Source: Bugula neritina
Taxonomy: Eukaryota; Animalia; Bryozoa
DNA: 64,000 nucleotides
Assembly (NCBI GenBank): GCA_964035545.1
Contig: OZ037772.1
Coordinates: 9,851,150 to 9,915,149, forward strand
Direction of reading: 5' to 3'
Position 1 is the stretch's first letter. Every line of letters begins with the position of its first letter. Below, one piece after another: positions 32,301 to 33,526 of this stretch. The position numbers and the translations under genes are program-made. The notes under the pieces were generated by a model, which made no database searches, was not told where the DNA came from, and worked only from the letters and a program-made list of their open reading frames with translations.

Positions 32301-33526
32301 ACGCAACTCCAATAAACTACAAGAGCGTTGAAAAGAATGTTCAATCACCAGAATTTTTACCCATACTTAGTTCACCAGAGTATCAGTCACCCTCAGTCCA
32401 CAGTGAAGTGGCTCCAGGTACTCCGCACACACAAGAGTTTGACAGTGGTTCGGCGGATAGCAGGTACTACCGAAACAACCCACCACGAGAGCCCGAGCTG
32501 ACTCCAATAAGATATGATAGACTTATGAAATATGTCACTGGCCCATACAACCAGCCATCAGTTGGCTCTCCATCGCCAGGAGGTAGAACTCCATCACCAG
32601 GAGGTAGACCTCCATCGCCCAGAGGTAGAACTCCATCACCTGACAGAAGTCGTTCTCCTACATCTGCCAGAGCTCTAGCTAATAATTTGCAATCTCAGTC
32701 ATCTGCTTCGCCAAGTAGGCAGACACCAGTGTTTGACAGTGGATCAGCGGATAGCAGGTACTATCGAAATAACCCACCACGAGAACCTGAATTGACACCA
32801 ATCAGGTATGACAGACTTTTGAAGTATGTTACCAATCCATATAATCAGCCAGCAGTTGTTTCTCCACCTTCTGAAATTAGATCAGCAGATGCTAGAACTT
32901 GTTCTTCTCCGTCTAATAATTCTCCACTTGGTGGCTGGAGTTCTGACTCACCACCACAAGAAGCTTTTGGTTCACCACCAAAAGTCCAGTCCAAATCCGA
33001 GAGAACTCCTCGTTCTCCTACAAAATCTTTCAGTCCAATAAGACAGCATCCTCGATCTGCCAGCAGCTCTAATTATGAGCGCAGTCCTAGATCAGATTCA
33101 TCTTATTTGACCGCCAATTCACCCAGATCTCATGGTGCCAGATCACCATATATACCAACATCTACTACCCCTACAATGAGAAGTCCTTCTCCTGAATTTT
33201 ATTCTTTGCCAACACCTCCTGTTGGTGGACGTTATCTTCGAATTGCTACCGCTCCTTTCATACAAAGTCCATCTCCAGAATTCTGTTCACCCAGGTCTCC
33301 TGCTCCAATTATACCATGTCTGGGAGCATCTACTTCTCCTTCTACAACTAGTCCATCACCTGGGATCCCTTCACCAGAACCTAGTGCAGTTGCTATAAGT
33401 TCTTCAATGCAAGCTCATGGCAGAGACCCAAGAACTCAACACACGCCTCCTGCTCATGCCCAATCACCACCTTCATGGGAAGCAGAGGTCTTTCCAATGA
33501 CTTCATCGTCGGACGAATCTTTTTAA
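29337..33526 (+). CDS. Divergent Bcl-2-family protein 3 (~844 aa; Ser/Pro-rich N-extension and 618-aa SP-rich tail, no TM)
   Basis: Exons 29337-29617, 29980-30080, 30506-30672, 30942-31070, 31670-33526. BH4-like [16 protein letters not shown]1-like [14 protein letters not shown]2 [12 protein letters not shown]|; the 591-aa ORF in the track lies within exon 5. Confidence 0.85.
29734..29953. repeat. Perfect 86-bp palindrome centred on (TA)n (29734-29819) followed by a (TA)n tract
   Basis: AGCAGCAAAAGGACTGCTAGCATTTA-(TA)n-TAAATGCTAGCAGTCCTTTTGCTGCT. Confidence 0.9.
31455..31595 (+). mobile_element. tRNA-derived SINE family A, partial copy
   Basis: GCAGCCGTGGTTTAGAGG...TTTGCCTAGTAAACAC...ATTGGTGATGTCAAGAAGAGCAT; the 3' tail is missing. 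Confidence 0.75.

Follow-up and report, generated by a model that had tools for sequence, protein, structure and literature searches.

A duplicated peptide under strong purifying selection in the long tail of a divergent bryozoan Bcl-2-like protein

Translation of the plus strand revealed that a 40-residue peptide is encoded twice, at positions 32438-32557 (copy 1) and 32732-32851 (copy 2), in the last exon of a Bcl-2-like gene located in the analyzed window, a 64,000-nucleotide stretch of bryozoan DNA. Both copies are held by strong purifying selection on the protein, while their silent sites and flanks have diverged to saturation. We consider it probable that an old internal duplication has equipped the disordered tail of an anchor-less Bcl-2-like protein with two docking peptides that would fold on binding.

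The constraint was apparent from direct comparison of the copies. The peptides are unlike at only 2 of 40 residues (M/L and G/N), the remaining 38 being identical. The two DNA stretches differ at 21 bases, and third codon positions account for 17 of these; 17 codons differ synonymously and two non-synonymously, exactly as counted in the original prediction. The Nei-Gojobori method gave 18 synonymous differences over 26.3 sites and 3 non-synonymous differences over 93.7 sites, with dN of 0.033 and dN/dS of 0.018 (Fisher p = 1.5e-12). The ratio is far below 1, as expected for the protein-level constraint that had been proposed. The dS between the copies, ~1.8, is saturated and hence imprecise. 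In neutral simulations with the number of changes and the transition share matched to the observed copies, none of 20000 runs had two or fewer amino-acid changes, the mean being 13.3.

The DNA-level repeat is slightly longer than the 40-residue core (32425-32587 versus 32719-32881), and the unit therefore comprises about 49 residues (extended units 32426-32572, 49 residues, and 32720-32866). In nucleotides the core of the copies is 73-90% identical and the flanks are at background; beyond the unit, in-register identity is that of the background, 16-30%. The copies are spaced by 98 codons and separated by a Ser/Pro/Arg-rich linker of 58 codons (32558-32731), in which in-register similarity to the stretch following copy 2 is lost (identity 16-50%). 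The linker also harbors a coding minisatellite (32576-32638) of three 21-nucleotide units (PSPGGRT-like), with the same number of units in B. neritina. A tblastn search of the 64-kb window with copy 1 recovered itself and copy 2 (E-values of 1e-26 and 1e-25) but no third one, the next match having E = 3.

The sole relative found was a protein cluster, P0001 (590 residues, 87% identical), whose members include KAF6018149.1, which is annotated as hypothetical and comes from Bugula neritina. The contig of this protein (VXIV02003332.1) is collinear with window positions 19211-43474 at 75-88% nucleotide identity, and the window is accordingly assigned to a related bryozoan. Metagenome and Logan contigs L001 and L003-L006 were, by comparison, 98-99.6% identical to VXIV02003332.1. 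Judged by its sequence, the window is that of a bryozoan close to, yet distinct from, the B. neritina of the VXIV02003332.1 assembly (dS ~0.2). All related contigs found were unspliced genomic DNA and no spliced transcripts were present among them; the Logan contigs are collinear with the genome and therefore lend no support to expression.

Both copies are present in the B. neritina orthologue and carry the same M/L and G/N differences. When the four 147-base units (two copies from each of two species) were aligned, 17 sites were found to be fixed by copy in both species, and no site was fixed by species instead. The duplication is therefore older than the species split and was not followed by gene conversion, which bears out the suggestion that it is an old one. 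The dS values agree, being 0.7-1.8 between paralogous copies versus ~0.2 between orthologues (p = 1.5e-4).

Comparison of the two species also supported translation of the tail encoded by the last exon, as had been argued from the repeat. The exon is 90.6% identical between species with one in-frame 3-base gap, against ~82% identity and many gaps in the flanking introns, and dN/dS is 0.33 for the whole tail, 0.078 for the repeats and 0.386 for the remaining tail. By copy, the ratio is 0.15 for copy 1 and 0.03 for copy 2. Changes affect 4 of 188 non-synonymous sites in the repeats versus 81 of 1139 elsewhere in the tail (p = 0.006), and the repeats show no deficit of silent changes between species. 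When codons rather than sites were counted, the repeats were only marginally more constrained than the remaining tail (p = 0.057). These values are measured on few changes, because only two closely related species are compared. Further 40-codon windows of the tail, e.g. ORF residues 161-200, are constrained as well, so that the copies are among the most conserved islands of the tail and not its sole one. In B. neritina, copy 2 carries two co-segregating amino-acid polymorphisms, one affecting a Tyr and the other a Pro, which make up two of the three replacement polymorphisms of the whole tail in six haplotypes (L001, L003-L006 and VXIV02003332.1). Copy 2 thus has some tolerance to change, which slightly tempers the word "strong".

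The gene that encodes the repeats, hereafter gene 3, was reconstructed as five exons on the plus strand. Exon 1 (29337-29617) runs from an ATG to a GTAAGT donor and matches the N-terminus of KAF6018149.1. Exons 2 (29980-30080) and 3 (30506-30672) are predicted. The former has canonical AG/GT borders with phases that fit exons 1 and 3 and is 96% identical to B. neritina without gaps; the latter, which is present in KAF6018149.1, has canonical AG/GT borders kept in B. neritina and is 90% identical without gaps. Exon 4 (30942-31070) consists of 43 codons, phase 0 to 0, and encodes a BH2-type motif that ends with GGW and is followed by a GT donor; its splice sites are kept in B. neritina, at 96% identity and without gaps. 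The open reading frame at 31751-33526 continues upstream without a stop as far as a ttttag acceptor at 31669, and the last exon is therefore 31670-33526, with 618 codons and a stop codon found at the equivalent place in B. neritina. Overall, the splice sites of all four upstream exons are kept in the related species, their phases are mutually consistent, and the exons are 90-96% identical without gaps versus ~82% identity with many gaps in the introns. The GenBank model KAF6018149.1 skips exons 2 and 4. It has no Pfam match, probably because the BH2 motif resides in the skipped exon 4.

The Bcl-2 part of gene 3 was searched exon by exon. Exon 4, which was searched within two stop-to-stop segments (30963-31127 and 30930-31124), matched the Pfam Bcl-2 family (PF00452) with E = 1.1e-4 and 23.1 bits, below the 31.4 cut-off, and matched BAX and BCL-2 chains in PDB with E = 1.3e-4. 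Its W-x3-GGW motif aligns with the C-terminal part of the PF00452 model. Exons 2 and 3, scanned singly, had no Pfam match, and the exon-wise scans yielded neither a BH1 nor a BH3 match. An intron directly after the GGW codon is a general property of Bcl-2 family genes.

Three divergent Bcl-2-like genes lie in tandem on the plus strand, at 21675-24240, 24734-28218 and 29337-33526, and their BH2-type exons end with GGW followed by gt at ~23250, ~27340 and 31070, respectively. The BH2-type exon of gene 1 matches PF00452 independently (E = 2.1e-4). On sequence grounds, gene 3 is the third of these three tandem genes. The last exons of the three genes are mutually unrelated; genes 1 and 2 lack the module, and tblastn did not find it in the tails of these two paralogous genes.

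The window as a whole is eukaryotic in character but unlike human DNA, with a GC content of ~31%, frequent microsatellites and sparse long ORFs. Two intron-less plus-strand ORFs located 5.5 kb apart, 47988-49226 (412 residues) and 53501-54517 (338 residues), are 84% identical to each other; they contain unequal numbers of LRPAPS[TA] and PSTSQAR-type tandem repeats, and neither matches a Pfam family. On the minus strand, positions 5376-5660 correspond to an exon for an IRS-type PTB domain (PF02174, E = 1.2e-11) of a gene spanning ~3300-5700. Long dinucleotide microsatellites (GT, AT/TA, CT and CA) are found at 25437-25800, 29750-29960, 45294-45641, 50533-51309 and 60139-60650 and yield spurious long ORFs in the program-made ORF list.

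We used several kinds of searches to look for relatives of the tail and of its repeats. Pfam-A contained no family at E <= 1 for either the 591-residue ORF or KAF6018149.1, and the tail and repeat profile had no PDB match beyond a chance nanobody (E = 1.7). Word searches were seeded with the complete 591-residue ORF, with the part of it covering residues 225-375 and, to catch fragments, with just the 147 residues that span both repeats; they returned the B. neritina cluster only. An exhaustive profile search with the 49-residue unit against 1.84 billion representatives recovered P0001 alone, and a metagenome scan with back-translated patterns gave 64 pattern matches, none of which was confirmed. 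The module is thus not a known annotated repeat, in agreement with the original prediction: it matches no Pfam family and no solved structure, and the proteins found to share it all belong to its own orthologue cluster. Bryozoans are thinly sampled in the collections, and the absence of relatives outside the Bugula cluster is for this reason weak evidence. Within these collections the module has so far been recorded from the Bugula lineage alone.

The tail is composed of 19% Ser and 17% Pro, with 60 Ser/Thr-Pro sites and an acidic, Ser-rich C-terminal end. No transmembrane or hydrophobic segment was detected in it, the maximum 19-residue Kyte-Doolittle mean being 0.47. AlphaFold2 modeling of the tail with orthologues resulted in a mean pLDDT of 35.6 and a pTM of 0.16. 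These predictions are consistent with an intrinsically disordered tail and uphold the earlier description of it as disordered and SP-rich. In each copy two short helices were predicted, at positions that correspond between the copies (tail residues 265-269 and 282-289 in one copy, 363-366 and 380-388 in the other), with pLDDT of 40-45 versus ~32 around them. The repeats also differ from the tail in composition: Tyr accounts for 12.5% versus 2.6%, Arg for 12.5% versus 6.3%, Ser, Pro and Thr together for 28% versus 46%, and aromatic plus aliphatic residues for 27.5% versus 17.7%. Prolines number 6-7 per copy, and a Cys or His pair that could bind metal is absent from both copies. Other short repeats occur in the tail. 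The sequence SPSPEF-[YC]-S is found twice near the C-terminus (33190-33290, tail residues ~505-540), and an akin SPEF/SPEY pair is located at tail residues ~225-240.

In the scheme that we favor, an old internal tandem duplication placed two peptide copies of 45-49 residues 98 codons apart in the Ser/Pro-rich tail of a soluble Bcl-2-like protein. Each copy would be a putative docking peptide, disordered alone and folding on binding. At its core there would probably be a short amphipathic helix centered on the invariant TPIRYDRL-x-x-YV, and an invariant Tyr/Arg/Pro-rich stretch precedes this putative helix core. The paired copies may bind a single or a dimeric partner at two sites, with a gain in avidity, and the putative binding is probably modulated when the Ser/Thr-Pro-rich tail around them is phosphorylated.

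Several other readings of the repeats have to be weighed. The similarity of the copies might reflect a recent duplication, gene conversion or constraint at the DNA or RNA level instead of selection on the protein, but nothing beyond the similarity itself speaks for this. The silent sites are saturated (18 of 26.3) when replacement sites show 3 changes in 93.7, the placement of 17 of 21 differences at third positions is the opposite of nucleotide-level constraint, and 17 sites are copy-fixed in both species while none is species-fixed. Maintenance by anything other than the protein is refuted by the saturated silent sites and the fixed-site pattern, and this explanation is almost certainly wrong. 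A generic short motif, which we regard as distinctly unlikely to be the source of the constraint, would be of one of three kinds known from motif classes: a beta-TrCP-type DSGxxxS degron, a PY-type nuclear import signal K-x4-PY, or a YxxPhi/ITIM-like motif. All three patterns match both window copies. Copy 1 of B. neritina, however, has DGG in place of DSG and Gln in place of the Lys of K-x4-PY, so one of the four copies lacks both the degron and the PY pattern. YxxPhi and ITIM motifs work in the cytoplasmic tails of membrane proteins, whereas no membrane segment is present here, and a motif of 4-7 residues does not account for 40 invariant ones; the patterns serve as leads only.

The copies may instead be small autonomously folded structural repeats, or mini-domains, and not peptides that are disordered alone. 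Forty consecutive near-invariant residues exceed the length of a typical short linear motif, and both the raised aromatic and aliphatic content (27.5% versus 17.7% in the tail) and the two short helices predicted per copy would fit a folded unit. But the model contains no packed fold (pLDDT of 40-45 in the copies, pTM 0.16), the 6-7 prolines per copy are not accompanied by a metal-binding Cys/His pair, and relatives were not found in Pfam and PDB; we deem a mini-domain unlikely. Another possibility is that the module acts like the BHNo/LIR region of BCL2L13, with YDRL as an Atg8/LC3-interacting core and the protein as an autophagy or mitophagy adaptor. The outline architecture is alike, BH-type motifs being followed by a long low-complexity tail with repeats and a functional motif (PMC9800997, PMC10887287), but the C-terminal transmembrane anchor that BCL2L13 needs for mitochondrial localization (PMC9800997) is lacking. 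YDRL does conform to the loose core pattern [WFY]xx[LIV], and the four copies of the two species all preserve it unchanged; this pattern, however, occurs 8 times in the tail, so that the match carries little weight. The residue directly before the Tyr of YDRL is Arg, whereas LIRs usually have acidic or Ser/Thr residues just before the aromatic position. No BCL2L13 protein was among the matches of any search. We hold such a role to be highly unlikely. A WW domain, an idea prompted by a YY-x-N stretch, was rejected upon finding no Pfam match and no predicted strands in the copies. A BH3-like helix was rejected too, the Leu...Asp signature being absent by reading.

The repeat pair is a clean, quantitative example of a functional peptide island in a disordered tail, with a built-in control: 38 of 40 residues agree between copies whose silent sites are saturated and whose flanks are randomized. 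As a kind of feature, a recognition peptide that is duplicated and conserved within such a tail is ordinary; its host, an anchor-less bryozoan Bcl-2-like protein, is unusual and unstudied. The long tail of this divergent invertebrate protein proves to be both coding and constrained, and the public B. neritina gene model is corrected at exons 2 and 4. The module is known from two close species only and opens no long-standing question. Bryozoan cell-death and mitochondrial-quality-control proteins have received next to no study, and the module points to the part of this protein that deserves attention.

Several known systems invite comparison. Gene 3 resembles the Bcl-2 family (PF00452) in its BH2-type W-x3-GGW motif, a sub-threshold match to the C-terminal part of the family model, and in the intron directly after the GGW codon. 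It differs in that the exon-wise scores are 22-23 bits, less than the 31.4 cut-off, and that a membrane anchor is absent. [quoted passage not shown] Gene 3 likewise has a long non-BH extension with repeats after BH2 (618 residues, with two copies of 40-49 residues and three 7-residue repeats). The anchor of BCL2L13 has no equivalent in the gene 3 tail (KD19 <= 0.47), and a Glu/Ser-rich BHNo with a W-based LIR contrasts with a Ser/Pro-rich tail bearing Tyr/Arg-rich repeats. No W-x-x-I/L/V LC3-interacting motif occurs in the tail, which has two Trp among its 618 residues (0.3%); the 8 loose-pattern matches all begin with a residue other than W. Homology to BCL2L13 was not detected in word searches, in PDB, in the exhaustive profile search, conducted with the repeat only, or with the BH part searched exon by exon. 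The resemblance is thus only architectural, and not a demonstrated homology. One may go further and propose that a bryozoan-specific two-site docking module makes a soluble, anchor-less Bcl-2-fold protein a scaffold or adaptor, parallel to the BHNo domain of BCL2L13 but independently evolved, with the tail, rather than the BH groove, recruiting partners; in our estimate this is unlikely.

The class of molecular recognition closest to the preferred reading is that of MoRFs and extended linear motifs, which are often duplicated for avidity. The 40-49 invariant residues of the module are long for this class, and no motif class can be assigned to them. The likeness resides in a constrained, compositionally distinct island within a fast-evolving disordered tail, in a helical propensity predicted at low confidence, and in the presence of two copies at a fixed distance.
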